From Utricularia gibba (lineage: Eukaryota > Plantae > Magnoliophyta): a stretch of DNA of 64,000 bases. Of the stretch, positions 5,886-63,414 are shown piece after piece. Below the pieces are notes generated by a model. The model searched no databases and was not told where the DNA came from. It saw only the letters and a list, made by a program, of their open reading frames with translations. The translations under genes were made by a program, and so were the position numbers. Positions within the stretch are counted from its first letter, which is position 1, and every line of letters begins with the position of its first letter. Location: the NCBI GenBank assembly GCA_002189035.1, contig NEEC01000024.1, forward strand, positions 310,001-374,000, read 5' to 3'.

Positions 5886-5892
5886 AAAGTAA

Positions 5893-6545: not shown

Positions 6546-6607
6546 TCTAATATATCCAAACGTTTCGGTACAAACCGTGGTTCCGGTTCGAACCGAACCC
6601 ACCTCTA
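6546..6607 (+). mobile_element. Orphan 3' terminus of a hAT element
   Basis: CGGTTC/AACCG subterminal motifs ending in AACCCACCTCTA, identical to the 12-bp hAT right end at 61911-61922. Confidence 0.65.
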
Positions 6608-6612
6608 CCCAT

Positions 6613-6760
6613 GTGTATCCTGTATTAATGCTACCTATGAAATAAGTAATTTTGTAGAAATCTAATACACGAACATAGGTTATGCATAAACCACGCTTGT
6701 GTGTATCTCACATTAATGATACCTACGAAATAAGTAATATGGTAGGAGTCCAACACATTT
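6613..6760. repeat. Degenerate ~88-bp tandem duplication
   Basis: TGTGTATC...ATTAATGcTACCTAtGAAATAAGTAAT at 6613 and TGTGTATC...ATTAATGaTACCTAcGAAATAAGTAAT at 6701. Confidence 0.6.
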
Positions 6761-7049
6761 GTGTATTATATACACAAATATAATGTACCTTTAAGTAGTC
6801 ACTACAGTGAAGCTGTTGTATCTTTTGTTTCAAGATTCTATTTTTTATAATACAAATGCTTGTTTTTTTATGTTTCTGCAATGTTTCATCGTAAGTGATA
6901 TTATATACTTGTAGGATAACAAAGCTGCACGTTATTACAAGAATGCAATACCAATTTTGCTAGAAGAGCAAGAGGTAATGTTTAGCGATATCTAGCGATA
7001 AATTAGTTATTACCAATATGTTTTTTTCTACAAAGAAGAAGAGAATAAC

Positions 7050-10000
7050 CAAAAAACATGAGTTTGTCATTTCCCCCTTTTAAAAGTTAAGAATTCGTAA
7101 ATTAATCTCTCTTCTACCTCCAATCCTTGAAACATACTTGGCATGCAAGAATGTTGTTCACCATTGTACTTTAGTTCTAATCCCATAAGCAAACTGTACA
7201 TAATTATGGGTCACAAACAGTCTCGACACAATTTACCCATTGTATCTCCTATTTAGCAATTTCAGCTTGAATGCCTCCTATCTTAACATTTAGTCCATTT
7301 CCCGGTTCTACATGGAGAACTCAGTCTCTAACTGTAAAAGCATCTAGAACAAGGAAATAAAGCAAAAACACAAATATTTGCATTTTCTAATAAATATATT
7401 TAATTATTTAAATTAAACACCTAATTAGAAGACACCAATCATATAAACACATGCATTAAAACATAGAAAAGTTAAATTAACATATTCTCACTTAAATCAT
7501 GTTGTAAACTATAAAAATAACAACAGTCATGAATCAACTACAACTAAGTCATGAGACACCAGTAAGGGTGCTATATTCTATCCTAGCACACTTATGTCAC
7601 TCTGTTTCTTTCTCTAGTCCATCAATTAATTCAAGATGAGCCTCTCGAAATGAACTTGAAAGGGCAGCATCCCTTAGAAGTTCAATAAGACATGCATCCA
7701 AAATAGAGAATTGCACTAATCATCCCCTAGAAGTTCACTCTGCCTAGGTTCAAATTGAACACGAAAGAGTTGCATCTATAATCACTTATTTAGTAGGGCC
7801 CTCGCTTTAGGAAAGACTCACTTGGATTACAAAACCTCATGGGTGGCTTGTTGATAAAGAGTGTATTGACACAAATTCGAGAGGAAATTCTAAACTCGTG
7901 GCACCCTAATTCTTTTTTTTAAAAAAAAAAAAAGCAACCTGAATTTTAGAAAGCAATCTAGGCACATAAACATCTAGTAGATCATAGAGCTATCCCTTAT
8001 CTATGCATGCATGACGTAGGAATTTAACATTACAACTAGAGAAAAAATTCGATTGTTTTCCTAGGAAATAAGCCAGGTTCAAGCGCCTAAGGTGAACATG
8101 CATAACCTAAGTAGAATATAAAATGTAGAAAAAATATACAAGACATAGTTTCAACTAGGGCATAGAAGAAAAACAATAAACACCTCCCTCATAAGTGATT
8201 CTAAGGATGTTCTCATCATCAGAATGGGAGAGAGTTCCTTAGTCATGGGACAATTGAGAGGGATTAAATACGATGGAAAGAGTTTCAATTTTGAATAAGA
8301 TAAAAGGACTTTTTGTCAGGACCCATGCCTAGGGCCCAAGAGGCATGAGGCATGATTGCCAAGTCCCATCAAATGTTAGAACTCAAGGCAACTTAACCCC
8401 TTTGTAGCTTGGAGAAATAACATTAAGATGGATACATATATATTAACTCACAACCGTTCAAACATGCAAAAGGAACTATGTCCAGGCTATTAAACATAAT
8501 CCTCACAACGTAGTTAAGGTTCCAAAAGCTATTCTTGACCTGCCGCAACTTCTACAACTAAACCCCTACTTTGGTTGATCACCAGACCTTCAGCCATTCC
8601 CTTCTACACCTGGAACAAGTTAAAACATAGAGTGGTCATGCTACTGAGGTTTGGTAAAAGATAAACATGTATGAAGTGAAGAAAGAGTGTTTAAGCATAA
8701 AATCTCAAAGTCAAGGACATATCCAAGTAGTGAGTCCCATTGTCTATCTTTGCCCAATCCTCTTGACCCTTCAGCTTAGGCATCACCTCCAGATCTTAGG
8801 AAATGGGTCATGTATTGCCTAAGTCCTTTAGTAGTGTTCAAAAGAGCCACCAACCGAACACCACCATTAAACTCAGACCATAGCATGCTTATAACGTGTT
8901 CCCTGGCCTTTCTTGACTGGCTTACCCCATAGGGATGCTTCAGACATGTTTGACATATTTAGCCATGAATCCCATGGTTAAAACCATGTTTCTAGGAGTG
9001 TGGGTCCACACTCCTCTCCATTTCCTAACATATATTCACATAGCACATAGAGAAGGAACATTGAGCACTTCATACACTTCGAAAAGGAACACCTGTTTGG
9101 AAACCGACCAACAAGGGCACCTAATCCTTGGAAGAAAACAATTTAGGTTTTGAAAGGAGAATTTTAGGGACTCTAAATAGATTTGAGACACCAAGACTAG
9201 AAGGACGTGCCCTACTGGACTCTTCACACAATGAAGAACTGGGAGGAAAAAAAACAAGTTAATGAAAACAAGGAAGAACTCTTTCCAAAACAACATATAA
9301 TAACACATAGGCAATCAATCACATATGTTCCAGAGAAGCATCAAAACATGCTTCCCAAATGCAGTAGCACTCATCCCACTTACCTTATCCCCTACAGAAG
9401 TAATCACTTCCTACAACTAGAATCAAGAGTTTCCCCTTCTCACTAGCTGTATTTCCTACCCTCCTCTTTCTCTTCAACTATGATTCTCCAGGCTTTTTCC
9501 AAAATGACTCCATCCATCTGAACCTAAGAGACACCATGAGTCAGCATCCCCCTTATCTTGAGGTTGCCATGTGGTCCTTCCTTTAGATAGCACCTACTTC
9601 ATCTCCATTGGTTGATAAAAACAACCTCAATACCGGTGTGGGCACCATCCTTTATTGATTTCATACATAACTATGATCATTATAGAGGCATTATACTAAA
9701 CTCCAGCAATGGATATTGCAGACCATAACACTTTTTGACCTTCCATAAAGTGCTTTGCATGCAACCTATTATAATGAAAACATCTTACCTTCTTCTTATA
9801 GTGGATGTGATTGGGATAGGCATTGAGAGAAATTTCTTATAATTCATTGAAATCCAATAGTCGCTTTTCTCTAACTACATCAATAGTCATATTGCATTCT
9901 TTAACAACCCAATATGCCTTGTGATGACTTCTATAGAGAGATAGCATGGTTTGTGATGCCTTGTGATGACTAAACCCCAATATTGCATCCTTATTGGGTT

Positions 10001-39501: not shown

Positions 39502-42500
39502 GGTTGCATGTCATTTCTTCAACAAATTTTAATTATGAAAAACGTAAAATAAAAATAAAGCATAGTACGAGCGTCAATCTCAGGGAGTTGAGTTTTGGAA
39601 AAAGTATTTTATACTGAACTTTTACAAATTGTCACGGGTTTATAAAAGGGGGTTTTTTAAACATATAAATAAAAACACTAAAATGTCCTCAATTGATGCC
39701 CATTGACCTTGATGTTTTTTGCTATCTCAAATGAACATATAACAACAACACTAGAAGGAAAAACATACACAATTTCATAAGGTCCAAGCCATATAGAACA
39801 CAATTTTCCTAAAAAGAGTTTCAAGGTAGTGTCAAATAAGAGAACTTTTTGACCAAATAAAAATTGATTCTCATGCAACATACTGTCGTGGAAGCATTTT
39901 ACCTTTTATTTGTGCAGAAGCTAGTTGGTGTAGGCATGAAGGTGAATTTCTTCCAGCTCATTCAAGTCGAAAAGTTTGTTCTCTCTAGCTTGGTCGCTAG
40001 TTCAGGTTGCATGACTTGATGGCCCAATATGTCATGTGATGAAGTTCAAGGGGAAGATGATCATGTGGTATGGAGACATTCCTATGGGATTCCTATAAGC
40101 AGTACGGTATGCCCATAGTGCATCATTGAGCCTTAAGTTCCAATCTCACATATTTGAGTTCACGGTCTGTGTCAAGATTCTCTTCACTTCTCTATTTGAT
40201 ATTTCTGCAATGCCATTTATTTGAGGATGTCTAGCTGTAGATAGACGGTGGGTTACTCCATACTTGGCCAGTGCACTCTTCATGGCATTATTCACAAAAT
40301 AGGTGCCACAGTTAGAGACAATGATTTTGAGGTGTCCAAACCGTGGGATCAAGATAGTGGTCAAGAAGTGTTCCATGGTTTTTGTATCATCTCTTTCACA
40401 AGCAATGGCTTCCACCCATTTAGAAACATAACCCACGGCAAGTCAAATGCAGAGTTTCCCTTACAACGGAGGAAGTGGTCCCATAAAGTCGATGCACCAT
40501 GCATCAAAGATCTCACATATGATAATGAGTTGAAGGGGCATTTGATCCTTGTACCCTAGATTTCCTTCTCTTTGATAATTTGGACACGCCTTGCAATGAA
40601 GGTAGGCATCCTTGAATATTGTAGGCCATATCCAGCTTCCAAGACATTCTTTGCAGTGATTTTTGAACCACAAGGTAACTCATGGCAATGTGAGAGAATA
40701 GATTGCACTTCATCTTGGGGGATGCATCTCCTAATAATCCGATCAACATCAATTTTCCAAAGATATGAATCGTCCCAGATGAAATTTTGGCTGTCACTTC
40801 TCAGTTTCTCTTTCTGGTAGTGATGGAAATCTGAAGGAAATTGTCCAGTCACTAAATAATTTACAATGTCAATGTACCTGGGACTTTCTTCATGGATCAT
40901 AAATAAGTGTTCGTATGGGAAGCTATCAGTGTACCAAGGACTGTTGTCATGGATCATGAATACCTTGTTCTATCATGAAGTGACATTTCTCATAATTCAT
41001 AACAAGGTTAGTCTCCACACAACGCTTCAAAATAAAAGACAAGTTAGCAAGGCATTTATCAAAACTATTTGCATAAAGCATGAAGTCATCAATAAAAACC
41101 TCAATGATATTTTCAACATATTTAGAAAAAATACTAATCATGCATCTTTGAAATGTTGCTAGTAAATTACATATTTCAAAAGACATTTTATGATAAGAAA
41201 AAATACCAAAAGGGCAAATAGAAACGACCATTTCTGGAAACCGAAGTAACCATCCAAGTAGCAATGGTCACTCCTTTCAGCAAGTCTTTTTAGCATATGG
41301 TCAATGAATGGAATTGGGTAGTGGTCCTTCTTGGTGGCTATGTTCAACTTTCAGTAATCAATAGACATTCGCCAGTCATTTTGCACTCTAGGAGGTAGGA
41401 GTTCCCCTTGGTCATTGGCCATGACTGTGATCCCAGTTTTCTTCGGGACGACCTGCACACAGCAAACATATGCACTATCAGAAATAGGATAAATTATACC
41501 GACAGTCAACAACTTCAGAAATTAGGGGCATCAATTTCCTTTGAGGTTGGAAAATTAGCTTTGTTCCCTCCTCTAAATAAATGCGGTGAGTGCATATGGA
41601 GGTGCTTATTCCTTCGATACCCACCAATGTCCATCCAATTACTTGTTTGTGCTCTTGGAGCACACTCTAGAGTTTTCCCTCCTATTCCAGAATTAGTGTA
41701 CTAGAGATAATAACAGGGTAAAATTTTATTCTCGCCAAGAAATAAATACTTTAAATGCTCAAACAAGGTTTTTAATTCTAATAATGGGGCATGAATAATA
41801 GAAGGAATCAACTATTTCTCAGGCATTTCCAAACTCAGAAAAGCAATATTAGAAAATTCAAGTGTCTAAGGAAAATAATCCAGATAATTCAAAAGTTGAG
41901 GGTCAAAAAATGAAATACTATTAGAATCAAAGTTTTTTATAATTTACGTGAGCAAGGGATCTTGCTTATGGATCATTCCTAAGTGTTTTACATTGACATT
42001 GAACAACTCTCATTGATCTGGTTCAGGTACTACATGGCTTTGTCCAGGCTGAAGTCCAGCACATGTCCATCAAATTGTAGAGAGATTGTGCGAGCTTGGA
42101 CATCAATTTTGGTACCTACGGTAGCCATAAACGGTCATCCCAAAATGATGGACTCCGAAATCATGGAGTTTTCACTCTCCATGGGAATAACTAAAAAGTT
42201 AGTAGGAAAAATCAAATCTTATCATGAACAAACACGTCATCAACTCTAGCATCAAGCTAAACATGTGATCTATCAGCTAATTGACAAACAACGCTAGTAG
42301 GCTCAAATTTACCTAGTTTGGAAGCAAGAAAAAGATAAAGAGACCTAAGCATAACATTAACCGATGCATCTAAATGACACAAGGCAACTGAAATTTTTGT
42401 TTCACCAATAGTCATAGGAATGGAAAACAAGCCGGATCCTTACACTTTCTTGGAATTCGTCTTTGAATGATTGTTGAAATATTTTCAGTCAAGGGAATCA

Positions 42501-45500
42501 CTTCCTCCACTTTTGTCTTCTTCTTGAGGTCACACAAGTCTTTCAACATTTTTGCATTCTTAGGCACTTGATTGATCATGTCTAGCAAGGGGACATTCAC
42601 GTTGACCTTCTTCATCATCTCCATGAATGCCTTCAGTTCACATTTTTCCTTGCTCTTCCTTCGAAGTCTTATAGGAAATGGAGGTGGAATCACTAGAGAC
42701 TTAGGTTGATCAACTTCTTGCATGTCCCTCTCTTTAACTTCTTTAGATGGCTTGATCATATCAATATTATGGACTGGAGAACTATCTGGATTCTTACAAA
42801 TAATCTCTTCATCCACATCATCATCACAGTCCAAGACTTCTAATTCATTTTCTTTAGACCTACCCACCTTAGTCATGAACCCTAGGTAAAGGTCTAGAAG
42901 ATCCTTTCCACTTCTTAAAGATATTGCATTGATATGCTCCAGCTGGGTGATTTGAGTTTGCATGCTTGTGATTCGTACATCCATGTCTTTTTTTAGCAGT
43001 AGGCATTTTGATGGTGTTCTCGACAAGGGACTTCACCATTGACTCCAGATTATGATTTGACTGATAAGGAATGAGAAGTTGCTTTAGAGGTCCAGTGATT
43101 TGTAGAGGTTGAGGCGGAGTAGTGAGAGTTTTCTGAGGAACAGCAAACAAGTTCCCTAGTGATAGTGCTAGACCAAGAGGCACTGGTTGTCTCTAGTGGA
43201 AACTAGGGTGATCTCTTCTCAGCATCTGTTAGTTTCCGTAGTTGTAGGTTCCTCATTGGTTCTAGTAGAATGTGTTCACTTCTTCTATTGGCATCTCATT
43301 AACTATGGGTCTTGGATCAAAATGATGGGAGGTTGAAGATCCTTGATACCTTCCTTATTGTTGGAGAAGTGATTGGAAGATAAGCTTCAAGGTATCACTC
43401 ATGACAACAAGTTGAGTTAAAACTTAAGAGTTGTCCATTTCATGCACTAATATTATTCGCTGGGTTCCTCCAGGTGATCGATATGACTGGTCATATCGGC
43501 TAGATGTGGAATTGGAATTAGCAACCATTTGTTCAATATATCTTTGGGCATCAGCACTATGGCAGTTCTATAGTAATGACCTATTATAAGCGGCATTCAT
43601 TTGTCCTCTAATCATGGGGGTCAATCCTTCATAAAAATGCTACAAGATTTCACCTTTAGTAAGTCCATGATGCGGATAAGTGTTGCAGATCTGGTTGAAT
43701 CAATGATAATACTCCTACAAATTCTCTCCTTCACTTTGTAGCATGAGGGCTAAAGTTCACTTTGTAGGAAGGCTCTTCCTAGGGGTGCATATCGATCAAG
43801 AAATTTTTGTACCATTTGTTCCTAGGCAGCAATAGAGGAAGGAGGGAGTCCCTACAGCCACTCCAAGGCTCACTTAGTGAGTTTGAAAGGCAAGACCCGC
43901 AACTTGAATTGGTTCTCTGTTGCACCTTTTAGATGCATGGATGCACAAGCCATGTTTAACTCTCTAAGATGATGATTTTGGTTGCTATTCTCTCTCCCAG
44001 CAAACTTAGTAACTATCTGGAACAAATATCGACATAGCTCAAAGTCCTCTTCCACATCAAAAATGATGCAAAAGTGGTCGATCAGCATGGTTTGTAGTGA
44101 TTTCTTCTTTAATTATCCTTAGTGTTGGGCCACAATTAACGATCGAAAGAATTGCAAAATTTGAGGATGATGTTGCTTCTGTTCTCCATGAACCATGGGG
44201 ACTCCAGTGGGTGGTTGAACAACTATTTCTTTGTCCGTAGAAGAACTGGAAGTTAGTTCTCACTTTTTCACCAGAAATGTGCACTCAATCTCCGTATCTA
44301 AGGGACACAAGATTTTTTGGTATGATCTCAAGCTTCGGTGGCCCTTTGGTGGAGATGATTGCATTAAAATAGAAAAACATAGCAGCAAAATAGAAACAAA
44401 AGACAAACAAGAGGAAATAAGGAAAAGGAAAAGAAAAAGAAAAATTATACATACAATAAACACAAAAATACACAACTCCCCGACAACTGTGCCAAAAATT
44501 TGTTGCGTATCGTTTCCTCAACAAATTTTAATTATAAAAAATGTAAAACACAAATAAAACATAGTACGAGTGTTGATCTAAGAGAGTTGAGTTTTGCGAA
44601 AAATGTTTTGTGCTGAACTTTTACAAATTATCATGGGTTTGTAAAAGGGAGTTTTTGAAATACAGAAATAAAACATACAATGCAAGTAATGGACCTTGAC
44701 TAAGGAAAGGAGTTCTTGAGAATTAGATTCTATTTCCTCCTTTTTTCTATCATTGCCTCTGCTTTCACTGATTCCTTCCGAATAACTAGTTATAGAAGTA
44801 AGGAATAGTCTACTCTCCCTTTCACTCTGATTGACAACGAGGCACGGGAATAACCTCATATGATCTCCCCTTAGACAATTGAGAGGACAAGAGGATTGTC
44901 GTCGATTGACCTCAAAACTGAATTCGTGTGTCGAGCTATTACCAATGGCCAATGGTGGGTATGAGGTCACTATCGCGGTATTCCGGTCACAAACAATTCG
45001 CTATCTTCCTCGAACCAATAGGGTTGAAGATGGTATTCTTCACCTTGTTCTTTGTCAAAATCCATGAGGAGTGGCCTGCTATTCATGGACTATGATAAGG
45101 AACCGTTACAGAAAGACTACATATGATACGTGGAAATACATGAAATCCAAAAGTCATTCAGCAAAGAACCGAGACTGATGCTCAAGACGAGGAAGTAAAC
45201 TTCATATATTCGCAAAAACTAAAAAGGTTTATCTACGAAAGACCATGAAAACAGGAAATAAAAACAGAAAGTTAAAGTGTTCTTCTTCCATTGGTGGAGA
45301 GGAAAGAACAACTTCAAGTGTCCAAAAGTCAGGTGGAAAATGATGTGATTCAAATTGTTCCAACTTTCTTTTAATTCATTCCCACGTGTATTTAACTTAC
45401 TCTACTCTATTTCCATCATTCTTTTTGTCTTGTATGTACAGTCAACTTTCTCATGCGTGCAATTAAGCATTTAATCATTACTGTAGACTTTGACATGTCG

Positions 45501-45797: not shown

Positions 45798-46162
45798 ATC
45801 ATAGTGTTAAGAAATAAAATATTAAACTATGTAATTGAATTTGAATTTTAAAATTTTGACGAAGTTATTAAATATATAAAATTTCTAATAAATTTTATTT
45901 TAATATTATAAATTTACATTGCTTTTATTTTTCTAATAAATTTATTAATTATTCAAATGTATTTATAAATAACATAAAAATAAAAATAGTCAACACAAAT
46001 ATAAGATATAATAATAAAACAAGTGATAAAGTATATATCATTTTAATTATATTTTATCATATGTTTAATTAAATGTATAATAATTTAATACATAATAATA
46101 ATAATCAACCTATAAAACGTTTACTACACATGTGGGTTACATAAGTCACGTCGGTAAGAGGG

Positions 46163-46185
46163 GTGGCTTGCAACTTGCAAGCCAC
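46163..46185. repeat. 23-bp near-perfect palindrome
   Basis: GTGGCTTGCAA-C-TTGCAAGCCAC. Confidence 0.9.
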
Positions 46186-48856
46186 TCTATTTCTGTGGAC
46201 GTGGGTTCGTAGAGAGAGAATTGCTATGCACATCTCTACTACATATGTATTTTTTATTTATTTTAATTTATATGATAAATTATAATTTTAATTTAACCCT
46301 GTGGATCGAAATCAATTTGTAACCGTTCGAATAGATAATTTGAAACTATTATTTCATGGTTCACAAAATAACTAATTAGTTTGAAACCATACGGTTTTGA
46401 TTTGGGAATCAGAAAAACCAGGATCAAATAAAAACAATGATTAAAAAATATTTATACAAAATCATATATTTAATATATTTTTATAAACTTTTTCTCAGGT
46501 AATTTGTTTACCCTTTATTAAATAATTCTTTTTTTATATTATTGGTTTATAAATATAACTTTTTATAAACAATATATACATATATATTGAATAAAAAAAC
46601 ATTTTTTGTAATAATAAATAAATTTTAGTACATTAAAAAAACATTAAAACTCCAAAAAATGTTATTTATTCAATAGTCTTAAAAATATGTGTATTTCAAA
46701 AATTAAATTTTTGAAAAAATATATTTAATTAATAGAACCAAGAATCCACATGAGCTTAGTTTTACGTTGTTAGGGTTTAGTATATAAATACACATGATTT
46801 ATCAATAATTGACATCACTATAGATATCAAAAAGATAATACATGAACGAGGTTATCTATAATTTACACTCGTATCTTTATAAGAAATAGCATACGTGCGT
46901 GGATTATACATAATTGATGCTCATAACTTAGTTGGCTATGTTTTAGTTTTTATATTTGTTTGTTTAATGTTCAATTTGTATTCACTTTAAATTATATTTT
47001 TAAAAGTTAAATTTATGAAAAAATAATAAGATGTAGGATGTGTACTACTATGGCATATGTGTAGTTGTTCGTTTATATAGTCATTTTAAAGTCGTCGTAA
47101 TGGATATTGACTTTAAATACATGTATTGCAATATCTTTGTGATACATTAATTCAAAATTTTAAATTCATAATAACATACCAGACTAACCTAAATAACACT
47201 TGTTTTTACACATTAGTCATACTTTGACTAATGTAAAAATTTGTGAGAAGTGTAGATTAGCCTATTATAGGATAATTATGTAATTATTACATAAGGAATA
47301 TAGAAAAAACATGTCTAATACTTACAGTCATCGTTTACAGCTGCAATGAGGCTATCATATACGATTTTATATAAAAAAAATGTGTATATATAAGTGGGTC
47401 AAGAATAATCCACGCTGGTAGCTTCAAAATACAAGGGTGGAATATGCATAACCCACTCCCATACGCATAATAATAATACACGAACATAGTTTATATAAAT
47501 AGCTTAAGTTGGATATTCTTTGCTTTTAAAATTTAATGATCAAGGGTTGGATTTATCTTTATGTAAAATTTTATTTTTATGTAAAATTTAAATAAATTTT
47601 AAAAAATATGGGAGAGTAAAAAATAACATAGGTATAATTACATAGTCATTAACAAAAGTATGACTATATATGTCTTATAAGAAAACCCACATCCGTGTAT
47701 AGTGAAGGGAGTTTTGAATATACATCCCTATCTTATTTTCATTATGTATATATTTTATTTTTAAAAAAAATACATTAATTTTTTAAAATTTACGGTAAAA
47801 TAAATTATAGTATTCTTTAATTAAAAAATATGTGAAAATAAAATAATTACTTACATATAAAAAATTATTAAACAGTTCATTACATTCCAATTTTTATTAA
47901 ATTTTTATTTTTATTTTATAAAATATATTTTTAAAATAAAAATTGCATTATAAAACTTTAATTTATAAATACGGTTTTTATACATTAATTTAAATATATA
48001 ATGAATAAAAATAATTATTTAAAAAAAGATTTATTTTGTAAATAATTGTAAAATAGGGTTATTCTACTAAGAAATATTTTGTGTAGGACTATTACACTAA
48101 GGCAGTCCAAAAACTAGCGAAGACGAGTTGTCTCTTCTATTATATTAAAATTCCTATCGGAGCATTAGTTTAAAATTTACAAAATGAAAAAATATAAATT
48201 TACATGACATACCAAACACAATGGGATAAACAGTTCACAAGGAAGCTACTCGAAACTACATGTACGAATTTTTTACTAATTGGACATTTCTCTCGCCGCA
48301 GAAGCGTATAAACAGCCACGCCACACCTCCGCTCCTAGCGTTACCCTCGGTCATTTACTAATTGGGCCCAATTTTTTGCTTTAAAGACCCATCTTTTTAG
48401 GTCCATAAATCTCAACACGCACGGACCCCGTACTGGTTTTGTGTGTGACCCAAGGCCGAGGATTAAGTTACTGGGATTTGATCATACAGTAACTGTGGAA
48501 CGACACCTTTTACCCCTTTAAAAGTGGGGCTTGTGATTCCCCAAACTTGTAGTTATGCACCATTAATGAGCTACTTCTAGGTGAACACGCTGCTTTTTGT
48601 GATCCCGTGGCTAATGACAAATAAAGTTCACAGTAAGACAAATAAGAAACGAGGTCCTAACAAGATTCCCGTTTGTGGGGGTAGTTTGTAGTTAATCATC
48701 GCCGTAGGACAAAAGCACTTCTTCTATATGTCTTAATAGGCATCGGAGTTGCCTTTCTTCATCTATTTCTCTGCGCAAGTTTCTCTCTACACCCATCTTT
48801 TCTTGCAAGAAAAACTAGTTCCAGAGAAGCTGCTCTCGGCATTGCATTTCATCATC

Positions 48857-50510: not shown

Positions 50511-51061
50511 TGTTAGTGTAAGTGTTCTAGAGACAATCAACTCATTGGAAAATCTTATCTTTTGATATTTACTTTGAATTATGATCAAATTTATATCATT
50601 GATAAAATCCTCTACTTGATCTATGTGCTATAGAAATTATGATGATATCATAATGTGAGATTCTTCAAGCACTTATGCTCAAATGTAAAAACTCTCTGGC
50701 TAGAGTATTTGTAAAATGAGGATATCACAAATACGGATAAGCTGGCACACATTGTGTTCCCTAAACTATTTAGGCAATGGTTCTCACAATTGATGTAATG
50801 AGATTACTAGAATCTATGCGTAGGTGTCGATTAGAGAATCGATTCACTGGATGACTCATCTTCGAGATGATACTATGGGAAGATAACCAAGTGTAAGTAG
50901 CAAGATCTCGAATATGACAGCCGTGCAAGTAAGCTTAGACTTGAGGTCAATAAAGTTATCTTGATCTTAAGCTTATATTTTCGCTCATTACTAATGTGAG
51001 CCTAATCATGGCTTGCTTAGTATGGATGAGTAGGGATGTGACTTTTTAAGGTTGAAGATAG
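50511..51061 (+). mobile_element. Truncated family-C LTR (first ~550 bp)
   Basis: Starts TGTTAGTGTAAGTGTTCTAGAGACAATC and is collinear with family C until ...GAAGATAG, where a second copy begins. Confidence 0.85.
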
Positions 51062-53100
51062 TGTTAGTGTATGTGTTCTAGAGACAATCAACTCATTGGC
51101 AAATCTTATCTTATGATATTTACTTTGAATTGTGATCAAATTTATATCATTGATAAAATCCTCTACTTGATCTATGTGCTATAGAAATTATGATGAGATC
51201 ATAATGTGAGATTCTTCAAGCACTCATGATCAAGTTAAAAACTCCCTAGCTAGAGTATTTGTGAAATGAGGATATCACAAATACAGATAAGCTGGCACAC
51301 ATTGAGTTCCCTAAACAGTTTAGGCAATGGTTCTCACAATTGATGTAATGAGATTACTAGAACCTATGTGTGGGTGTCGATTAGAGAATCGAATCACTGG
51401 ATGACTCATCTTCGAGATGCTACTATGGGAAGCTAACCAAATGTTAGTACCAAGATCTCGAATATGACAGCCGTGCAATTAAGCTTAGACTTGAGGTCAA
51501 CAAAGTTATCTTGATCTTAAGCTCACATTTTCGCTCATTACTAATGGGAGCCTAACCATGGCTTGCCTAGTATGGATGAGTAGGAATGTGACTCCCTAAG
51601 ATTGGAGATAGTTGATTGATCAATAAAGGATTCATCACTCATGTTAGCGATGAGATCATATCTCAAGTAATTACATCAAAGCCTAACAGTAAGTCCTGGG
51701 CCCAGGGTAATGACACTCGAATTGTTTGAGTAGGTCATTGAGTGTTAGTGTTTGAATGTAATTATAAGTTCGATACATCAGAAAGACACACACCCATGTT
51801 CTGGTATCGAATAAGATATAAGCATGATGAAAGCTGTTCATTGTATGGTGGCTGGTCATGGAAAGGCTCAATCAGTTCACCTGATTGTTCTTACATCTTG
51901 GGGATCATGATATGTTGCTAGACATCACTCATGATCGATAATGATGGATTTGATTAATTAAGATTTAATTAATAAATCCATTATTACGGCCTTGATTGAA
52001 AAAGCCTATAGGGTTACACACAATAGTGGAGTCACTCATCGATATAAAATAGAATGGCACAATTACATGAGATGTAATTGGTAAAGTGGATAAATGAAAT
52101 AGAGAGTTATTTTGAGATTAATATTGATTAAACTCAAAATAAAAGATCTTGCATAGATAAGATTTGGGACATATACATATCTCTACAAGATAAGATCTTT
52201 ATGGAGATTTGATTTGATATGTTACCATGTATCTATCAAAAGATTTAGATCTATACATCTGGTTCTATATCTTCGTACTCTCTGAGATTGATCCACAAGG
52301 GGGCGATTTTCTCTATTAGTACCTAAGGAGATCGACCAGCATTCTACAATCTTTAGAAGGTTATCGGAGTGCTTCACGTGTGGATACCACAGAGACCGTC
52401 TACTATTGGCGGTTGGTGAACAACGGAGACCTCTGAAAGGTATTTTCAGTATCCTTTTATCTGATATATATCGTATTCCAAGATCTGCGTTGGGGGTTTC
52501 TCAAAATTTTTTTAAATTCCACTGCTTTTGTGACATGCGATATCTACAAGAAACCCAACAATGGTATCAAAGCGAGGTTGCAGAATGCGTGTATACGTTA
52601 GAATCTTTGTTGATTTTGCGAGATGTTCTCGTATGTTGCCTTGCCGGCGATCATCGTAATAGCATGTGATTTTTCAAGATGTTCTCGTATGTTGCCATGC
52701 CGGCGATCATCATAATAGCATGTGATGCACAAAACATGATCATGTTGGATTGTTTTGCTGCCATAATGATGCACGAAATTTGATTGATGATTAATGCTTT
52801 CGAAAATCATATCTTACGTGTATATGCACAGCATGTTGATGGTTTACATGTGTGTAGTCGTGGGGCATGATGGCCTTTGCACGAATTTTGATAAATATGA
52901 TCATATTGGTGATTATCGTTGCATATGATGTTTGATAATTTAGTTGTGACCAAGGCATCTAGGGTCAATTAGGATTTTCGATTATTATGTGTGAAAATCT
53001 AGGGATATGATGCGTTATGAACGAAAGGGCAAGGGTTGTCAAGATTCCTATCTAATAGACTATTGATATCCATAGTGCAAGTGTTGCCTATGGAAAAATC
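51062..53100 (+). mobile_element. 5' LTR (51062-52560), PBS and leader of a copia-type element; internal coding region deleted
   Basis: Full 1499-bp LTR followed by PBS TGGTATCAAAGC (52562-52573, initiator-Met type) and a 56-bp tandem duplication at 52621-52726. Right boundary is approximate. Confidence 0.82.
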
Positions 53101-53299
53101 TCCTACTAAATAATTAAGCTTATTCCTTCCACTGACATAAGGAGAACGAGAGTCATTTTTAGTGCATAGAGTTGTTGGCTAACGTCAATTTTTACAAGAG
53201 CTTGAATGTGGTCCCTTACCCGAACATGATGATTTTTCTAGTACTCAATAAGTGGGTTTTTCTACCTCATCGAGTCTTATTTGTCATAAAAGATCAAAA

Positions 53300-55155
53300 A
53301 AATATTAGTGATGATTTTTTGGATATTCGAGAGCATTTTATTGTTTCTAATCCCGAAAATTTTTTTTGCAAACATTGTGCTAAAGAGTACACTTTCAAAA
53401 AGGGTTGGGGAACAGATACATATAAGAGGCATTTTAGAGAGAAGCATACTGATAAATTATCTCAATTTCGTCAAACTAGATTATGTTTAGGGGGGTGATA
53501 ATAGTGTGAGATTATCCAATTTTGTTTTTAATTATAAATTTTTTCAAATGTGGTGCGTTATTTGATACTTAATGAACTTTCTTTTTCATTAGTTGAAAAA
53601 CCTTCCTTTGATGATATGTTGAAACAAGTTCAACCGGTGTACAAAAATTTTACTAGGAAAACCACATGCCATATTGCACTTGAGGATTTTAAAAACATGC
53701 GTGACTCTTTAATTTCTACTTTTAAATCTCTACAATATAATTTTTGTTTGATTTGTGATAGGTTGGAAAAGTTGTAACAATAAGGTCTTGTTTGGTTGAT
53801 GTGTTTTAGGTATTCGTGGGTTTAGATTATTTGAGTTTAACTAAACTCAAATATGTGGGTATAAAATTACTCATACCCCCCTTGGATATACATATACTCA
53901 TTTATGAGGGTATTATATGGGTATAATGATTATTATATACATATATAAGGTATAATTATACCCACATATCAAACAATATAATTTTATTAAACTTATCATA
54001 AACCAAATTTATATCCTCATATCAAACATGGCCTGAGAGTTATATTGTTATTACATATTCTTAGGTGGATAATTCTTGGTGTATGCAAAAGCGAATTTTA
54101 GCTTTTCAAGAATGGCCATCAGTACATAATGGTTTTTCTATTGCTAAAATTATTGAAAAGGTCACAATATTTTATGAAATATCTGATAGAATTTTTTCTA
54201 TTTCTTTAGATAATGCATCTCAAATACAAATCCTATTGACATTTTGAAAAGTAGCATGAATGCTATGTTGAATAGCATTTTTTTTCACACTAGGTGCATT
54301 TGTCATATCTTTAATTTGTGTGTTCAAAATGGTTTGAAAGAATGTGAAATTTTTTTAACTCCTATTCGTGATTTAGTTATTGTGATTAAAGCTACACCTA
54401 ATAGAACAGATGATTTTAAAAAGATTTGTCAAGAAAGTAATATCTCTTATCGTAAATTTAAAAGTGATTGTCCAACTAGATAGAATTCTACATATGACAT
54501 GTTACAATTTTTGATTCTTTATGAAAATGTTCTTATTAAATTTTCTGAATCTTTTACGGTATACAATTTCTTGACTCATTTTATTTTTTAAAAAATAAGA
54601 GGTTTAGTAAATTTATTAGAAACATTTTATTATTGTACTAAGATTTTGAGTGGTATTTATTATCCAACTTATCAACTTGTACTTTCATGTATTTGTAAAA
54701 TTTTGTTTGCTTTTTATGATCATCAAAGTGATTGTGATTTCTTTGGAGATGTAGTGCGAAATATGAAAAATAAGTTTTTGAAATATTTTGATGAAATCAC
54801 ACATTTGTTTCTTATTGCCTATTTTTGATCCCCGGGTTAAATCTAGAGGTGCGAAAACGTTACTTGAATGTATTTCAGAGTCATTTAGTATAGATGATGT
54901 TGCTTTTTCTATTAAAAATTGTGAAGAAATTGATGTTGATGCTAATAATGTTCTACGTGCCATGTATTCTCTTTATGCTTCTAAATATAGTGATTTTGAC
55001 AGTCGCAATCTGATGGACATAATTCATAGGAAATATAGCTCATTTGTGTTATCCTCTTCATCATCTCCATTAAATTTTGTTGATCAAATTACACTTTACA
55101 ATAATACTCCTATTGTTGAGGGTGTTGATGATGACAACTTTGATATATTGGATTG
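53300..55155 (+). pseudogene. hAT transposase (BED finger, catalytic region, truncated dimerisation domain)
   Basis: BED finger FFCKHCAKEY...GTDTYKRHFREKH; WKSCNNKSYIVIT..VDNSWCMQKRILAF; ISLDNAS; FFHTRCICHIFNLCVQNGL; DCPTR*NSTYDML; SGIYYPT; FDPRVK; ends at DDNFDILD(W) at 55155. Stops and frameshifts throughout. Confidence 0.9.
53784..54033. mobile_element. Tourist-like MITE inserted in the hAT transposase, 250 bp
   Basis: TIRs GGTCTTGTTTGG / TCAAACATGGCC, flanks TAA / TGA. Removing it restores WKSCNN-KSYIVIT. Confidence 0.8.
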
Positions 55156-55173
55156 TGATAACACATATTTTTG
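55156..55173 (+). repeat. 18-bp stub of a family-B LTR 5' end
   Basis: TGATAACACATATTTTTG, identical to 63786-63803 and to the reverse complement of the LTR ends at 28957 and 32934. Confidence 0.7.
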
Positions 55174-57618
55174 GGGAAAATTTGAGAATGTGCCACCCAA
55201 CACAAGTAATGTTAGTCAATGTGTCCCTATACTATCGAAATTAATGAATTTGCCACTGAATTCATTATGTCATTGCAAATGTGCCACCCAAGTCTTTTCC
55301 CATCTTAATTAATACCCTTCCATATGTGTGAGCAGCGGTCGTGTGTAAGGACACGCACATAAACAAAAAAATGTGCCATTGTATGTTCAAATGATTGAGT
55401 TTTGTGCCACTTATCTTAAAAAATAATATAAAAGGGGAAATGAGACAAAATACCAAACATGTATCACCTAGCAAAAGATATCAATATCCGTAGTTTTAAA
55501 CCGTTGCAAAACAAAAGTAGAAGGGGCATAACATTATCAATGACTAATTTCCTGTGCAACGCCAATATCTTCGACAAATGCCTCCAACTCCCGTTTGGTA
55601 AACCAAGTAGGAGTCATCTGGTAATGAAACAAAAGTTAGTGACTCATTTAAATATAAAATCACTCAAATATATTTGACGTACAAAGTAAGGATATCCCTC
55701 TATGTCGAATTGATCCCGAGCACTTTGCACGAACAAGTTTATGTAATAAAGCACATACAATCCACATTTACTAACTCCCGTTTGAGTAGGCACCTGATTT
55801 ATAAATGTCAAAAAATCACATTGAGAATCGTAGCATTAAATCCATACCATTGGTTTGAGTAATGACATCTTCCGATAAGTATCCTCTGGTTCAGATGGCT
55901 TCAACACTGAATATAGATTGTTAATGAACCTGCAACCACCAAAAAAATATAATGTTCATATAACTGCAACTCTGAAAAATTTCTTCGAATCTAAGGTCAC
56001 TCATACCTCCTAATCATTGACTCATTTAGTGAAATATTGGACTTCCCCAATGAGTCCAAAACAATCAAGGAATGTTTATTCTTGATACTTGGGTTGCAGA
56101 GAATCACCAAATACCAATGACTACTGCACATATGAAGTATATTGTGAATTTTTAGTAACTATGTACCTAAATAAATGAAAAAAATGTACCTTGCTACAAC
56201 ATGGATGAAAATGTATTTCTTTCTATTGAACATTTGCATCTTGTGCAGCTTCTTCATAATTGATTCCACATGTTCACCTCGACACCATGCTCCAAAATAC
56301 AAACATTCAACAAACACATACAATTTGCTGCAAGCTTGAGGTATTGATTGTCGAACCTTCCTGTAGTATATTTGATAAAATATGATAATGAAATCCTATT
56401 GAAGTAGAGCCATCATACAAAAAACATATGGGGTTGAAACTTACTCAAGCAGTTTGGTGAATGTCTCATCTTGAAGCATTCCAAATCTTTCAATACCTAT
56501 AGCATCAGGATGTGGCCGGAAATATGTAGCTCTTCTAGTAACTATAGGACTATGGAAAGGAGGGGTTTGTGATGACACATTAATTGGATTGTGTTTTGGA
56601 GTATGACAGGTACCAATCTCCTCATAAGTATGTAGAGAAGATTAGCCAACATCTTGTTTGATCTCTATTGTGGTGTGGTGACTAGCAGACTGTGTTTGAG
56701 GTGCACTGCTAACTTCTTCATTTTCTGTAACATGTGGGATTGAAACAACAGGCACTTTTGGTTTCCTCCTATTCTTTTGGGCAGGTGGAGAACTTGTTGA
56801 TTCTTCGAATGTCGCGTTCTCTTTTGCTTCAGTTGTGTCTCTAAACAAATATAACAAGAGAAGCATTTGGAATATCAAACAATAAATCACAACACATTAT
56901 AATAAGAGGATCAGTTGCAATATTAGTTATATTATTTTAAAAAAATATAATTATAAGATTTTTCAGAATCTACCTAGAACATTTTGTTGACTTTTGTGAT
57001 GGAGCATGTGATTTTTCAGGCATTTTGCATATGACTTTGTTATGCCTAGTCTCTCTACAATTACTGCACTGCATTATTCTCTTCCCACTTCGAAGCCTTT
57101 GTTTTCCAATGCTAAGGGGTGGTGGTTCATCCCGCTGTCTTTTCCTTAACTTAGGAGGTCTACCTCTTCTCTTTCGAAATGGAGGGGCAGCTATAGGGGG
57201 TTTTTCCAAAGCTGGCCAGTATTCCGAAGAATTAACTGGCATAATAATACCAGCATAACTAGTTGAATACTTCTCCACATTGTAACATTCATTGACATAG
57301 TTGTATGGATCTCTATGGGAAGCCCAAATTGCTTTGACAGCATGGGCACAAGGAATACTGCTAAGGTCCCACTTACGTCAAGCACATGTTTGCTTGTTTA
57401 AATTCACCAACACTTGCACATCTAAGCTGTTAACTTGCCATATTCCATCATTGCATGGCGTGGCTCTAAAATTCTTAGCTTTCTCAATGAATTTTTGTAG
57501 AAGGGTTCTGATTTTTGGGCAAATCCCAGGTGACCAGGTTCTAGCTTGCTCCCTACAATTTCGCATCCTCAACATAACCTTGGTCCTTATAGTTTCCAAC
57601 AACTGTATTATAGGCTTG
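55174..57618 (-). mobile_element. Mutator-like element (MULE), one end: TIR plus transposase-Ulp1 gene
   Basis: TIR-like GGGAAAATTTGAGAATGTGCCACCC with internal repeats of ATGTGCCACCCAA; MuDR SWIM domain TCA*RKWDLSSIPCAHAVKAI, PPFRKRRGRPPKLRKR and Zn knuckle CSNCRETRHNKVIC. The opposite TIR was not found. Confidence 0.8.
55537..57618 (-). pseudogene. Chimeric MuDR transposase C-terminus::Ulp1 (C48, FUG1-like) SUMO protease reading frame, two premature stops
   Basis: Exons 57618-56974, 56840-56445, 56360-56190, 56123-56007, 55929-55848, 55793-55683, 55617-55537; all six introns are GT-AG and phase-compatible. Protease motifs SHWYLVILCNP, LIVLDSL, VPTQTGVSKCGLYVLYYINLF, YPYF|MTPTWF. In-frame stops at 57378-57380 and 56642-56644. 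Confidence 0.85.
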
Positions 57619-58990
57619 TGATGCGTGTCGTTTCCACAACAAATTTTAATACTTTTAAAACTCATAAAACACAAAAGCGTAGTACGGGTGTCGAACACAG
57701 GGAATTGTTTTTGAGTGAAAGGTGAGGTACCCCGAATACAACTGTCACAATTTGTAAATGGTTTTGAAGGTTAAAGGTGCGAGAAACATTGATGATGAAG
57801 CTTGAGTAAGCGAATGAGAAGGGTTTTGAGCAAACAACTAAAATAAACATAAGCGATGAACCTTAAATAAAGTAAATGTTCCTAGGTTTGGAATCCTGTC
57901 CAGCTATGTTCATTGCGTCTTCACTCTTCCCTGGTCCTCTCGAGTACTCGGTTATAGGAGTAAGGAATTGCCTACCCTCCCTTACACTCTCTTGCAAGAA
58001 GGCACGGGAATAGCCCGATGTTGCTCCTCCTTGGACGAACGTGAGAATAAGAGGCCTTACCAGCATACCCTCACGGCCGAATTGCGCGCATGTGCCCGAG
58101 TGTTGCCAATGACTCAATGAGTCCAGATACGAAGTTACTACCTGTCCATTGATAGTGAGGTACGGCTACAAACAAAATGTTGTCTTCCTCCTATCAAAAG
58201 GGCTCGAGTTGGTGCTTTCCACCTTGCTCCTCTCCAAAATCCGCAGGTAGTGATCAATTAACCATGAACCTTAAATAAGGGGACTGTTACAGAAAGACTG
58301 CAACATAGTCGTGCGAAGACATATGAAACCTGATCGGATTCAAAGAAAATGTGAAGATAAGCTAACGAAACATAGATCTGGTGGTGTTCCAACCCAGAAA
58401 CGGAAGTTTCTAGCCACGAACGGCCATACAAACTAAAGGAAACGCAAACAAGGTTGTAGAGAGAAGCAAGAGGAAAAATCCTCTAGAGAGAGAAAAACAA
58501 AAGAGAAAACTAAACTAACTACTCTCACGTCTGAACAGAACTGGACTTCAATGAGAGTTTGAGATTTCGTGTCCCTATGATTCTGCTGAACTTGGGATGA
58601 CTTGCAGGCAAACGTCTAACACTGGTACGCTAATGATGCCGCATGTCAGAGACTCCCGTGTTCCACACGTCATGGCTCATGATTAGGCGTTTGTAGTCTT
58701 CCGGAAATCAAGGGAATGTTAGCTCGGGAAGATCCAATTTGTCGCCATTTGATGCCCTCTTTCTCTCACTTCCTACCACGTGTGCATCTCTAGAAAAACT
58801 CAATTAAAACTAGTAAAATTAATAGGTAAAATACAAGATTTAGGATAATTACCCTAAACTAGATAAAAACCTAAATCTCATATTATAGACTCCTAATTAG
58901 ACACTTCTAATCACATTTAAACATAAAAACAACCTAACAAATAATAAGCAAATGACACTTAACGTATTCCCCCACACTTAAATCATGCTT
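57619..58990 (-). mobile_element. 3' LTR (57619-58964) plus PPT stub of an Athila-like element, truncating the MULE transposase
   Basis: Ends match family A (TGATGCGTGTCGTTTCCACAACAAATTT ... GACACTTAACG); adjacent PPT region reads AAGTGTGGGGGAAT on minus. Confidence 0.85.
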
Positions 58991-59199
58991 GTCGTCAAGT
59001 ATGAAAACAGATAGAGATATGATTTTGTTAATTATTTTGAGAATATTTTAATATTTGATTTGTTTTAAATGAGTTATCAATATATATTTAGTAATTCGTT
59101 TATTTTAATTTTGCAGGTCAATAGATACTTTAAATATTCCATTGGATTGTAGTTTATTGCAAATGCAAGATCGGCATATTTTGAGTCGAATTTTGAGCC

Positions 59200-59520
59200 G
59201 TAAAGATATTTCATATGTTTATTGAAATTTTTTATTGAATATTTATATTCAATACTCTTACCGAATGTATTATGATTGAGTGTGTTTTTGTTGAATATTG
59301 GTAAATCTATTCTTATTCAATATTTTTGTTGAATATTTTCTGTGAATCTATTTTATCCAATCTACTCTTATTGAATACTTTTTTTGTGAATCTATTCTTA
59401 TTGAATATTTTTATTGAGTATTTTTTTAATCTATTCATATGAAATGTATATTTATCGAGTTTAGACTTATTGAATATTTTTATTTAATCTATTGTTAATA
59501 AATCTATTCTTATTATAGGA
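59200..59520. repeat. Degenerate AT-rich tandem repeats
   Basis: Repeated TTGAATATTTTT / TGAATCTATTCTTA motifs. Confidence 0.6.
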
Positions 59521-59529
59521 TTTGATATT

Positions 59530-60750
59530 TTGCATAAGAGGGATGTACAAGATCTTATACTAGTCTTCTCAAGTATGCAAAAGAATTTTATTGAAATTTT
59601 ACCACAATTTGTGGATGCATTGAGGACAAAACGCTATTGGTGCAATGTGTTGAAGAATCCTAGAGTACCCAAGAAGAGTGAAGATGTGTCTAAGGATGAG
59701 AGGATAGAAGAGGTAATGATGTTGAAGGGGAAAAGTACACATATGGTGTCAATGATGTGGATGATACATTTACATTTATAACAAAGAAGAATGAAGAGCT
59801 TCGCTACAAGTTGGATTGGTATGAGAGCCGTTTAGCGTATACTGGACCCTCTTTGAGTGCCTCTGAACCTCAACGAAAACTGGTTATCTTGGACATAAAT
59901 GGTGTGCTCGCAGACATTGTATACATGGCTGGACCATAAGGGTCACGAACCCCTCCAGACAAAATTATATATGGCCGATCAGGTACGTTAACACAACACT
60001 TATTTTTGTGTGTTATATGCATTAACACTCTGTGAGATATCATAAGTAGTTTTTGGTGTAATTTGTGTAGTCTTTCTACGTCCATATGCCTGTGACTTTA
60101 TTAGGTGGTGTTTGGATAATTTTGATGTAGCCTTATGGTCATCGCATGGCGGGTACGTGTGCTGCATCTGTTTTTTTTTTTTTTTTTGGTATTGCACAAA
60201 TACTTTCAAGTGATTTCTTTTGTAGGGAGCAACTACAAGCAATCACTAAATGGGTATTTCCACCTTACTTATTCAATAAACTCATTTTCGTGTGGGACTA
60301 AATGATGACTACGGACATAGGTGTAAGTATTCACAATAATCCTAACAATACGGTCTACATGAAGGAGTTGAGTCGTGTATGGGCTATCAACAATGGATTG
60401 AACATAAGATATGACTGTAACAATACCTTATTGATTGATGATTCACCTCACAAGTCAATGAAAAATCCGATAAGTCATTTTAGTTATTCTCCTATACCAT
60501 ACACTTGTTTATATATAAAAACTAAGCCTACATTTTTTAGGAAAATAATGCTGTTTTTCAAGTCCCTATTCACATACTAATAGGGCTGATACATCACTAA
60601 ATGTTGATGGTGAGATGCGGACTTTTCTTGAAGGGTTACGGTATGTTCATGATGTTCCAAGCTATGTTCATGACAACCAAATAGGACAACCCCACATACA
60701 TTAGGGACATGCCTTATGGAAGTATTACGCATGCCTACAGGATTATTAGA
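59530..60750 (+). pseudogene. FCP1/NIF-homology HAD-superfamily phosphatase pseudogene
   Basis: RKLVILDINGVLADIV (motif I); PDKIIYGRS|VFLRPYACDFIRWCLDNFDVALWSS; KLIFVWD*; MKELSRVW; NNTLLIDDSPHKSMKNP; DTSLNVDGEMRTFLEGL...IGQPHI. At least three stops, one frameshift and a mutated splice donor (ATAAGT). Confidence 0.85.
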
Positions 60751-62515
60751 GGGAGCCTCTAATATTAGTTCTTGTGAAAAATTATGTTGTAGTTGGAATT
60801 CTTTGGTTGTTGACTTTTTTTTCTAAAAGACAATTATGTCGTCGTTAGTATTAAATTCGTTAAATTCCCATATTCATCATGTGAAATATGTTGCAGTGAA
60901 TAGTGACCCTCTAGATCAATTTGGAGGCACGTATAATGATTTATAAGGGTGTCTTTGATCACTTATGAACATGCATAAGTTCTGTTAAGTGTGCTTGGGC
61001 AGCGTGTCCTTTAGGGTTGTGGTTGTCGAATTGTCAGACATTTTGATCCATTCTTGAGGGTGCCTAGGATCTTCTTTGAACAACCTTAATGATTGTTAAG
61101 GATGTTTGGAAACTGTTCGCAAAACATGTGTCAAATATGTGATGTTAATTTTGTAAATTTAATCTACTTAATCCTTTTTATTTGTTGTTTTCAAAATAGG
61201 TGAAGGTTGGAAAAATTTTATGAAATAGATAATGTTTTAATTTTAATTTGAAAAATACACAATAATTACAAGAAATTATATAAAACAACTATATAAACAT
61301 ATTTATTTTCAAAAATAAATATATAAATAATAATTATATTCGTTTTATATGATTTGAAATCTTTTTGTATTTGTTTCAAAAAAATTTAATTTTATCAAAT
61401 GTATATTCAAATACTAATAATTTAATAATTTTTATCATTTATTTTATTCATTTAAGTCACAAATTATATTGATTTTAATTATACTTTACTGGGTATGTTA
61501 TCAAATAATTTAAATTAAGGTATTTTAAAAATTAACATAGTATATTACATAATATATTCAGTTAAATATAAAATTTAATATTTTTAAATATATCATTTAA
61601 TAATATCATAAAAAAAAATTAATAATTATTAAAAACTTCGCTGTCAAAAACCCACAGTGATTCATATGGATGCCTGGAAAACACCTAAAAACAGTAATCG
61701 ATCGGTTCTGGTTACGTTTTAGTTGGCAAATCTTGGTTCTGGTTTTGAATCAAAACCATCCGTACTGTTCCGGTTTCGGTTCGGTTCAAGGTTTGGGGAT
61801 ATGGTTTCGAACCGAAACTGAAACCATTGCCTTTTGTGAACCACGGTTTCGGAATCGACAGTTCACTGGAACCGTATGATTCTGAACCAAAACCATACGG
61901 TTCGGAACCAAACCCACCTCTACCAGTATCTAAGAAGCTTCCGGGCATTCATACGCCTACTTTCCTAAGTCCTTAGCGTAGACAGACGTTGGCATGCCTT
62001 CAATACCACTACTTGCCACCCAGACAAACCACAGATCCAACACTAACAAAATTCAATATAGATGTCAAGCGAGCTACACGAAGGACTGGTTTGGTTGCAT
62101 GGAAGTGGCAAATCCAAGCTTTAATTATTATGGTGTACGTAACTTGAGTGTTACAAAAAACATTGCTTGATTGATAGTTATAGAATAGTATTAATTGTGT
62201 TCGGTTGAAAGATTTGATTACTATACAAAATAAATAATGTTAAAGACTTGATTACCCCTTTTATGAAAAATAAATAAATGCACTCTTTTGAAGAGTGCGA
62301 TGATGTTGTTTATGTTTCTCCTGTTCTCTTCATTTGTTTCTAGGGTTCGAAATTCAGAATTCATCTCTTCTATTTAATAATTGGTGATGGGGAATTAGAA
62401 AAAAGTTGCTCAAAAAGACCTTTTTTTAGGAGAAGAGAAGAATCTTATCATTATCTTGAAGAAATGTATCAAAAAGGGTTGGAAACTAGAGAGCAGACTC
62501 AAATTTTAAACAATA

Positions 62516-63414
62516 ATACCCTCACGGCCGAATTGCGCGCATGCCCGAGTGTTGCCAATGACCCAATGAGTCCAGATACGAGGTCACTACCTGTCCATTG
62601 ATCCTGAGGTACGGCCATATACAAAACATTGTCTTCCTCCTGCCAAAAGGGCTCGAGTTGGTGCTTTCCACCTTGCTCCTCTCCAAAATCCGCAGGTAGT
62701 GATCAGCTAACCATGAACCTTGAACAAGGGGACTGTTACAGAAAGACTGCAACATAGTCGCGCGAAGACATACGAAACCCATTCGGATTCAGAGAAAATG
62801 TGAAGATAAGCTAACGATACATAGATCTGGGGGTGTTCCAACCCAGAAACGAAAGTTTCTAGCCGCAAACGGCCATACAAACTAAAGAAAATGAAACAAG
62901 GTTCTAGAGAGAAGCTAGAGAAAAATTCCTCTAGAGAGAGAAACAAAAGGGAAAACTAAATTGAAAGTAAACTAAACTTGTCTGAATAGAACTGAACTTC
63001 ATTGAGAGTCTGAGCTTTCGTGTCCCTATGATTCTGCTGAACTTTAGATGACTTGCAAGCAACGTCTGACACTGGTACGCTAATGATGCCGCCTGTCAGA
63101 AACTCCCGTGTTCCGCACGTCAAGTCTCATGATTAGGCGTTTGCAGTCTTCCGGAAATCAAGGGAATGTCAGCTCGGGAAGATCCAATTTGTCGCCATCT
63201 GATGCCCTCTTTCTCTCACTTCCGGCCACGTGTGCGCCTCTAGAAAAACTCAATTAAAACAAGTAAAATTAATAGATAAAATACAAGATTTAGGATAATT
63301 ACCCTAAGCTAGATAAAAACCCAAATCTCACATTATAGACTCCTAATTAGACACTTCTAATCACATTTAAACATAAAAACAACCTTAGAAATAATAAGAA
63401 AATGACACTTAACA
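62516..63414 (-). mobile_element. Truncated LTR, paralogue of 58065-58964
   Basis: Collinear with the 57619-58964 LTR from ATACCCTCACGGCCGAATTGCGCGCATG to GACACTTAACA, with scattered substitutions. Confidence 0.9.

Follow-up and report, generated by a model that had tools for sequence, protein, structure and literature searches.

Near one end of a 64,000-nucleotide window of Utricularia gibba DNA, the remains of a Mutator transposase are followed on the same strand by short exons that read as a SUMO-protease-like domain. The question raised by this locus is whether the two parts once made a single protein, belong to one element as separate genes, or merely lie side by side. MuDR-type Mutator-like elements (MULEs) with an Ulp1-like (Peptidase_C48) protease directly downstream of the transposase, on the same strand, are called C48-MULEs here. 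We consider the locus to be the dead remnant of a low-copy C48-MULE that has lost its 5' part, with a probability of about 0.85.

The gene model was rebuilt from its coordinates. It runs on the minus strand from 57617 to 55537 and comprises seven exons and six introns, which splice into a single frame of 534 codons (1602 nt) with no frameshift; every intron is of the GT-AG type. Exon 1 (57617-56974) holds the last ~215 codons of a MuDR-type transposase, including the second half of the SWIM domain and a CCHC zinc knuckle. Exon 2 (56840-56445) is a 132-codon linker, rich in Ser, Pro and Thr, that leads into the start of the protease domain. The protease continues through exon 3 (56360-56190), in which codon 400 is His, exon 4 (56123-56007), which holds the catalytic His (SHW) and Asp (LDS), exon 5 (55929-55848), exon 6 (55793-55683), which holds the oxyanion Gln (VPTQ) and the catalytic Cys (KCG), and exon 7 (55617-55537), which includes the terminal TGA. 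Two premature stops interrupt the frame. The first is a TGA at codon 80 (57380-57378), at the site of a SWIM cysteine in exon 1; the second is a TAA at codon 281 (56644-56642) in exon 2. The layout given in the initial annotation, a single frame over seven exons with six GT-AG introns, two in-frame stops and no frameshift, was thus reproduced. Exon GC is 0.36-0.43, intron GC is 0.21-0.33, and intron T content is 0.40-0.48; low GC and T-richness are typical of plant introns. An Rfam search of 55000-59000 returned no matches.

The identity of exon 1 is well established. The 134-residue piece that follows the first stop was searched against a library of 1.84 billion proteins and matched 835 of them at E<=1e-10 (top E 3.9e-31), the best at 35-45% identity. 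The named matches are MuDR-type, SWIM-domain proteins of asterids (Rhododendron, Sesamum, Erythranthe, Primulina, Castilleja). Pfam recovered the second half of SWIM in exon 1 (14 bits), and the CCHC motif lies C-terminal to it, at model residues 184-197. Motifs and homologues therefore agree with the earlier assignment of this exon to the SWIM/zinc-knuckle end of a MuDR transposase. Only this end is present. When 22 long MULE transposases were aligned to the window, they matched 57629-56973 and left the rest of the 64 kb blank; neither the catalytic DDE ("MULE") domain nor the N-terminal DNA-binding domain was found in the window in this alignment.

The transposase homology ends at 57618, and a high-copy repeat of ~445 bp that begins with TG (57619-58064) adjoins the break. 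Contigs from DNA runs of the same species were aligned at 80% likeness; by contig depth, which serves as a rough guide to copy number only, the repeat stands at 4600-8000 compared with about 30 for the neighboring stretch. Many of these contigs have loose ends precisely at 57618/57619. The repeat has the look of a solo LTR or of one end of a high-copy element, and diverged copies of it occur elsewhere in the window at 13148-12773 (reverse), 44501-44894, and 39505-39590. The Mutator fragment yielded neither a terminal inverted repeat nor a target-site duplication; its 3' flank has no inverted partner in the window, and its 5' end is missing. The borders of the element are consequently undefined, and because the 5' end is missing, the absence of a terminal inverted repeat says little.

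Several other repeats surround the fragment. An element at 58065-63413 is flanked by 900-bp direct repeats (58065-58963 and 62516-63413) that are 91% identical; no gag-pol open reading frames were seen in it, and 60302-60577 holds a weak NIF/FCP1-phosphatase-like fragment (Pfam NIF, E 0.028). On the plus strand, 53172-55312 holds the decayed relic of a hAT-like transposase in which a BED zinc finger can be recognized (Pfam zf-BED at 53172-53495, E 0.003); this relic stops about 70-220 bp short of the Mutator fragment's 3' flank. A unit of ~475 bp is present as two tandem copies at 50511-51535, with a period of about 550 bp and 93-94% identity. The block from 46001 to 48000 is very AT-rich (GC 0.22), and the GC of the remaining window is 0.31-0.43.

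The protease module consists of six coding exons (~960 bp) that lie 133 bp behind the transposase in the same orientation. The four motifs SHW, LDS, VPTQ, and KCG occur in Peptidase_C48 order, with LDS 21 residues after SHW, and the retention of the catalytic His, Asp, and Cys and of the oxyanion Gln, as first proposed, is borne out. The oxyanion Gln lies 6 residues before the catalytic Cys, a spacing that we take to be the same as in yeast Ulp1. With single exons as queries, exon 4 matched PF02902 at profile positions 95-119 (11.8 bits) and exon 6 at positions 163-190 (12.4 bits); both scores are below the gathering score of 20.7, and the two matches are collinear on the Peptidase_C48 profile. 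In searches of the Atlas, a protein-language-model resource, PF02902 was assigned to 91 of the 100 named neighbor clusters of exon 4 and to 78 of the 100 of exon 6 (top score 0.94, 190 shared features); the neighbor clusters of both exons are plant Ulp1 fragments.

Other searches with the protease exons were negative. The Atlas search with exon 3 gave only noise, protein searches with exons 3 and 6 as queries retrieved no relatives, and a PDB sequence search with the catalytic exons 4 and 6 gave no matches. The N-terminal half of the domain (the end of exon 2 plus exon 3) had no similarity detected by Pfam or by the Atlas. The protease domain had been described as complete; the catalytic half of that description is supported, whereas the N-terminal half has no detectable similarity, and a complete Peptidase_C48 domain is plausible. 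Judged by its motifs and profile matches, the protease half is a Peptidase_C48-like (Ulp1-like) module in short exons that keeps the His, Asp, Gln, and Cys motifs.

One rival reading is that the two halves came together by chance, as a decayed host ULP-like pseudogene beside an unrelated fragment of a Mutator transposase. Such an origin is favored by the failure to find a terminal inverted repeat or target-site duplication tying both parts, and by the related transposases outside this genome, which have no protease. No similar protease was found in the top 150 representatives of the transposase relatives, in 10 relatives with long C-terminal extensions, in 55 relatives of a related transposase (P0013), or downstream of the transposase in 9 fetched relative loci; in total, about 220 related transposases were without one. 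Since relatives elsewhere lack the protease, the link between transposase and protease rests on the copies within this genome.

These copies argue strongly against chance. A 656-nt paralogous contig (run X12, contig 3), about 90% identical to the locus, covers 56346-57006 and contains the transposase end, the spacer, the linker, and the start of the protease. Because this paralog keeps the layout, the layout belongs to a small repeat family and not to a chance neighborhood. It also agrees with the initial annotation in placing a multi-exon C48-like gene after the C-terminal end of a MuDR transposase, on the same strand. The transposase and protease parts have similar multi-copy depth: the summed depth over the protease exons and the transposase tail is 3-6x that of the single-contig stretch 57400-57567, again as a rough guide to copy number. 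The C48 sequence is physically linked to mudrA inside a repeated element, and we regard a chance juxtaposition as very improbable.

The copies differ in their stops. One other copy has Cys at codon 80, but its codon 65 is TAA. A TGA at codon 148 is shared by other copies and by a 98.8%-identical version of the locus (DNA run X8). A search for stop-free copies had been proposed; the relatives of the locus seen in DNA runs of this species have stops of their own at different codons. At codon 400, the other copies have Pro, and the His found here is a private change in a conserved motif; the copies with Pro read IFIPV, presumably the motif typical of the C48 family. Between run X12 and the window, C>T and G>A changes make up 119 of the 253 differing positions. 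Changes of this kind are the signature of methylated, decaying transposons, and the sister copies are decaying in this typical manner. The protease module does not behave like a conserved host gene: it exists as several diverged copies that are linked to the transposase and have stops of their own.

RNA runs X1 and X2 of the species contain no contigs with at least 80% likeness to the locus, and of seven RNA runs from this species, not one has any of the words sampled from the locus. Because only the tail of the transposase is left, premature stops are present, the DDE domain is absent, and no RNA contig matches, we judge this copy to be a relic.

Whether intact ancestors of the relic encoded one protein or two depends on the stretch between exons 1 and 2. 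This spacer (56973-56841) is 133 nt long, AT-rich (GC 0.21, T 0.48), and readable either as an intron or as intergenic DNA. Its intron-like composition is a point for the fusion. The stop codon of the transposase, TAG at 56972-56970, shares a base with a candidate AG-GT donor whose GT occupies 56973-56972. At the other end of the spacer, a T-rich tract and an AG directly precede exon 2. An in-frame ATG (56866-56864) lies inside the spacer, 9 codons upstream of the exon 2 acceptor; the first Met after the start of exon 2 is model residue 336.

The reading frame alone discriminates poorly between these possibilities. Of the 24 GT/AG pairs close to the junction, 7 would keep the frame; the in-frame junction carries little weight, because about one pairing in three matches. 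The 119 linker codons before Met 336 contain 1 stop, compared with 6.9 expected, and in 5000 shuffles the probability of at most 1 stop was 0.006. As so open a frame is not expected by chance and no Met occurs in it, translation of the linker probably began at a site upstream of exon 2.

Introns close to the end of the transposase also occur among its relatives, which favors a fusion. In gene models of stand-alone MULE transposases related to this one, from other plants, short AT-rich introns interrupt the low-complexity tail behind the CCHC knuckle. In one relative (L007), a tail intron at 7810-7890 lies 26 aa past the knuckle, and if it is left unspliced, the protein ends 8 codons later. A second (L009) has a tail intron at 3640-3724, 3 aa past the knuckle, and a third (L008) has two, at 3955-4035 and 4102-4206, located 37 and 60 aa past it. 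We also compared the linker with the tails that follow the knuckle in these relatives, as a sign of common origin; its score was no better than that of composition-preserving shuffles (about 0.1), and the argument was given up. This result counts against a fusion, as does the lack of the protease in the roughly 220 related transposases and their loci.

With two genes, the transposase would stop at its own TAG, and the protease would be a separately transcribed passenger gene, driven either from the AT-rich 133-bp spacer or from the 3' end of the transposase gene. Translation would start at ATG 56866 or at Met 336, the latter giving a protein of about 199 aa that is limited to the catalytic domain. 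Two known elements fit this arrangement: the Ulp1 of the cucumber CUMULE, the analogue described best, is a separate five-exon gene, abundantly expressed while MuDRA is silent (PMC8126186), and the KAONASHI ULP genes stand as separate genes (PMC13317346, PMC4948706). So do the in-frame ATG in the spacer, the one-in-three odds of the frame match, and the tail of 18 aa between knuckle and TAG, which falls within the range of the stand-alone relatives. However, ATG 56866 sits inside an apparent polypyrimidine tract with its AG acceptor, and a start there would give the hydrophobic sequence MLLLLYLF, whereas a start at Met 336 leaves the 119-codon open frame unexplained. The gap of only 133 bp between the genes and the frequent splicing of the post-knuckle tail among the relatives also speak against two genes. 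We consider this arrangement quite possible, if short of probable.

For the intact ancestors, a spliced transposase-Ulp1 isoform, made through the donor that overlaps the TAG, is the single most likely route, although we put it slightly below even odds; a separate start at ATG 56866 is nearly as likely. In these ancestors, translation of the protease probably ran on from a frame opened upstream of exon 2. The putative protease presumably frees some factor restricting transposition from SUMO or a different ubiquitin-like modifier. The initial annotation had proposed a single transposase-protease polypeptide. The in-frame joining that this requires is possible, but RNA runs X1 and X2 are blank and the frame match has one-in-three odds; the fusion is neither shown nor refuted.

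A more elaborate proposal holds that a FUG1-class host gene was captured independently and welded to the transposase, and that the fused transposase-deSUMOylase counters SUMO-dependent silencing at the ends of its own element. The frame compatibility and the retained catalytic motifs are consistent with it, and the module is small, with no more than the catalytic domain, which is also how FUG1 is described (PMC6117582). On the other hand, RNA runs X1 and X2 have no matching contig, every copy seen is in decay, and no SUMO or anti-silencing activity has been demonstrated for an element-borne Ulp1 (PMC6117577, PMC13317346). The spread of C48 over the MULE clades is fit as well by an old acquisition with repeated losses as by repeated capture (PMC4948706). 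We hold this proposal to be improbable, and an anti-silencing role of the protease is speculation.

A narrower combination, in which the stop-overlapping donor acts as a switch and the protease derives from a FUG1-class host gene captured independently of KAONASHI and CUMULE, also appears unlikely. If the switch were real, the unspliced message would encode the transposase alone, and the spliced message would encode the transposase-Ulp1 fusion. The donor that overlaps the stop codon is the sole point of wider interest at this locus.

The idea put forward in the initial annotation, presented there as new, has precedents in the literature: MULEs whose ULP lies downstream and co-oriented (PMC2528002), C48-MULE clades of wide distribution (PMC4948706), and transposases that end in an Ulp1 domain (PMC2836005). 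Arabidopsis, melon, and rice are all known to have MULEs with Ulp1, according to the citations of Hoen 2006 and van Leeuwen 2007 in PMC2528002. In grapevine, MULEs carry ULP in both orientations relative to the transposase, and in four families (Mutavine-3, -4, -17, and -18) the transposase was scored "including the ULP-1 region" (PMC2528002). C48-MULE clades are widely diverged across angiosperms (PMC4948706). Ginger1 transposases have a C-terminal Ulp1 domain, and Ulp1 domains also occur in hydra, lancelet, and maize Mutator elements (PMC2836005). The role of the Ulp1 domain in such elements is unknown (PMC6117577, PMC13317346).

Compared by description only, CUMULE of melon and cucumber is similar in being a MuDR-type MULE with a multi-exon Ulp1-like gene besides mudrA and many genomic copies (PMC8126186). 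The Ulp1 gene of CUMULE has five exons and a coding sequence of 1,599 bp and is expressed alone, whereas the module studied here has six exons and ~960 bp and is frame-compatible with the transposase. CUMULE also has 118-bp terminal inverted repeats and an 11-bp target-site duplication; neither was found here. The four Mutavine families and the C48-MULE clades share with our locus a downstream ULP in direct orientation, and most of their copies are old and broken (PMC2528002, PMC4948706). They come from other species and another family, and the published work, again compared by description, does not model a fusion at the level of splicing.

KAONASHI (KIU), found in the Arabidopsis VANDAL non-TIR MULEs, likewise provides an element-borne C48 protease with an intact-looking triad that is strongly silenced (Hoen 2006; PMC13317346). 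In those KI-MULEs, the ULP is reverse to mudrA and joined to VANC (PMC2528002); here, both parts are on the minus strand, and the protease follows the tail of the transposase. Ginger1 and the animal and maize Mutator elements combine a DDE transposase and Ulp1 in one polypeptide, and are a precedent for reading the locus as a fusion (PMC2836005). Ginger1 is of a different superfamily and the other elements come from different hosts; their fusion lies within an annotated transposase open reading frame, whereas here it would depend on a candidate splice across a stop codon. FUG1 (At3g48480), the fourth plant ULP class, resembles the module in being small and in consisting of the C48 catalytic domain only (PMC6117582, PMC6117577). 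By description, FUG1 is a conserved host gene, whereas the module is multi-copy, transposon-linked, and decaying. The locus is a dead addition to the ULP-carrying MULEs that are already published, and a fairly ordinary find; it adds one plant lineage and one gene layout to the long list of Ulp1-carrying Mutator-like elements.
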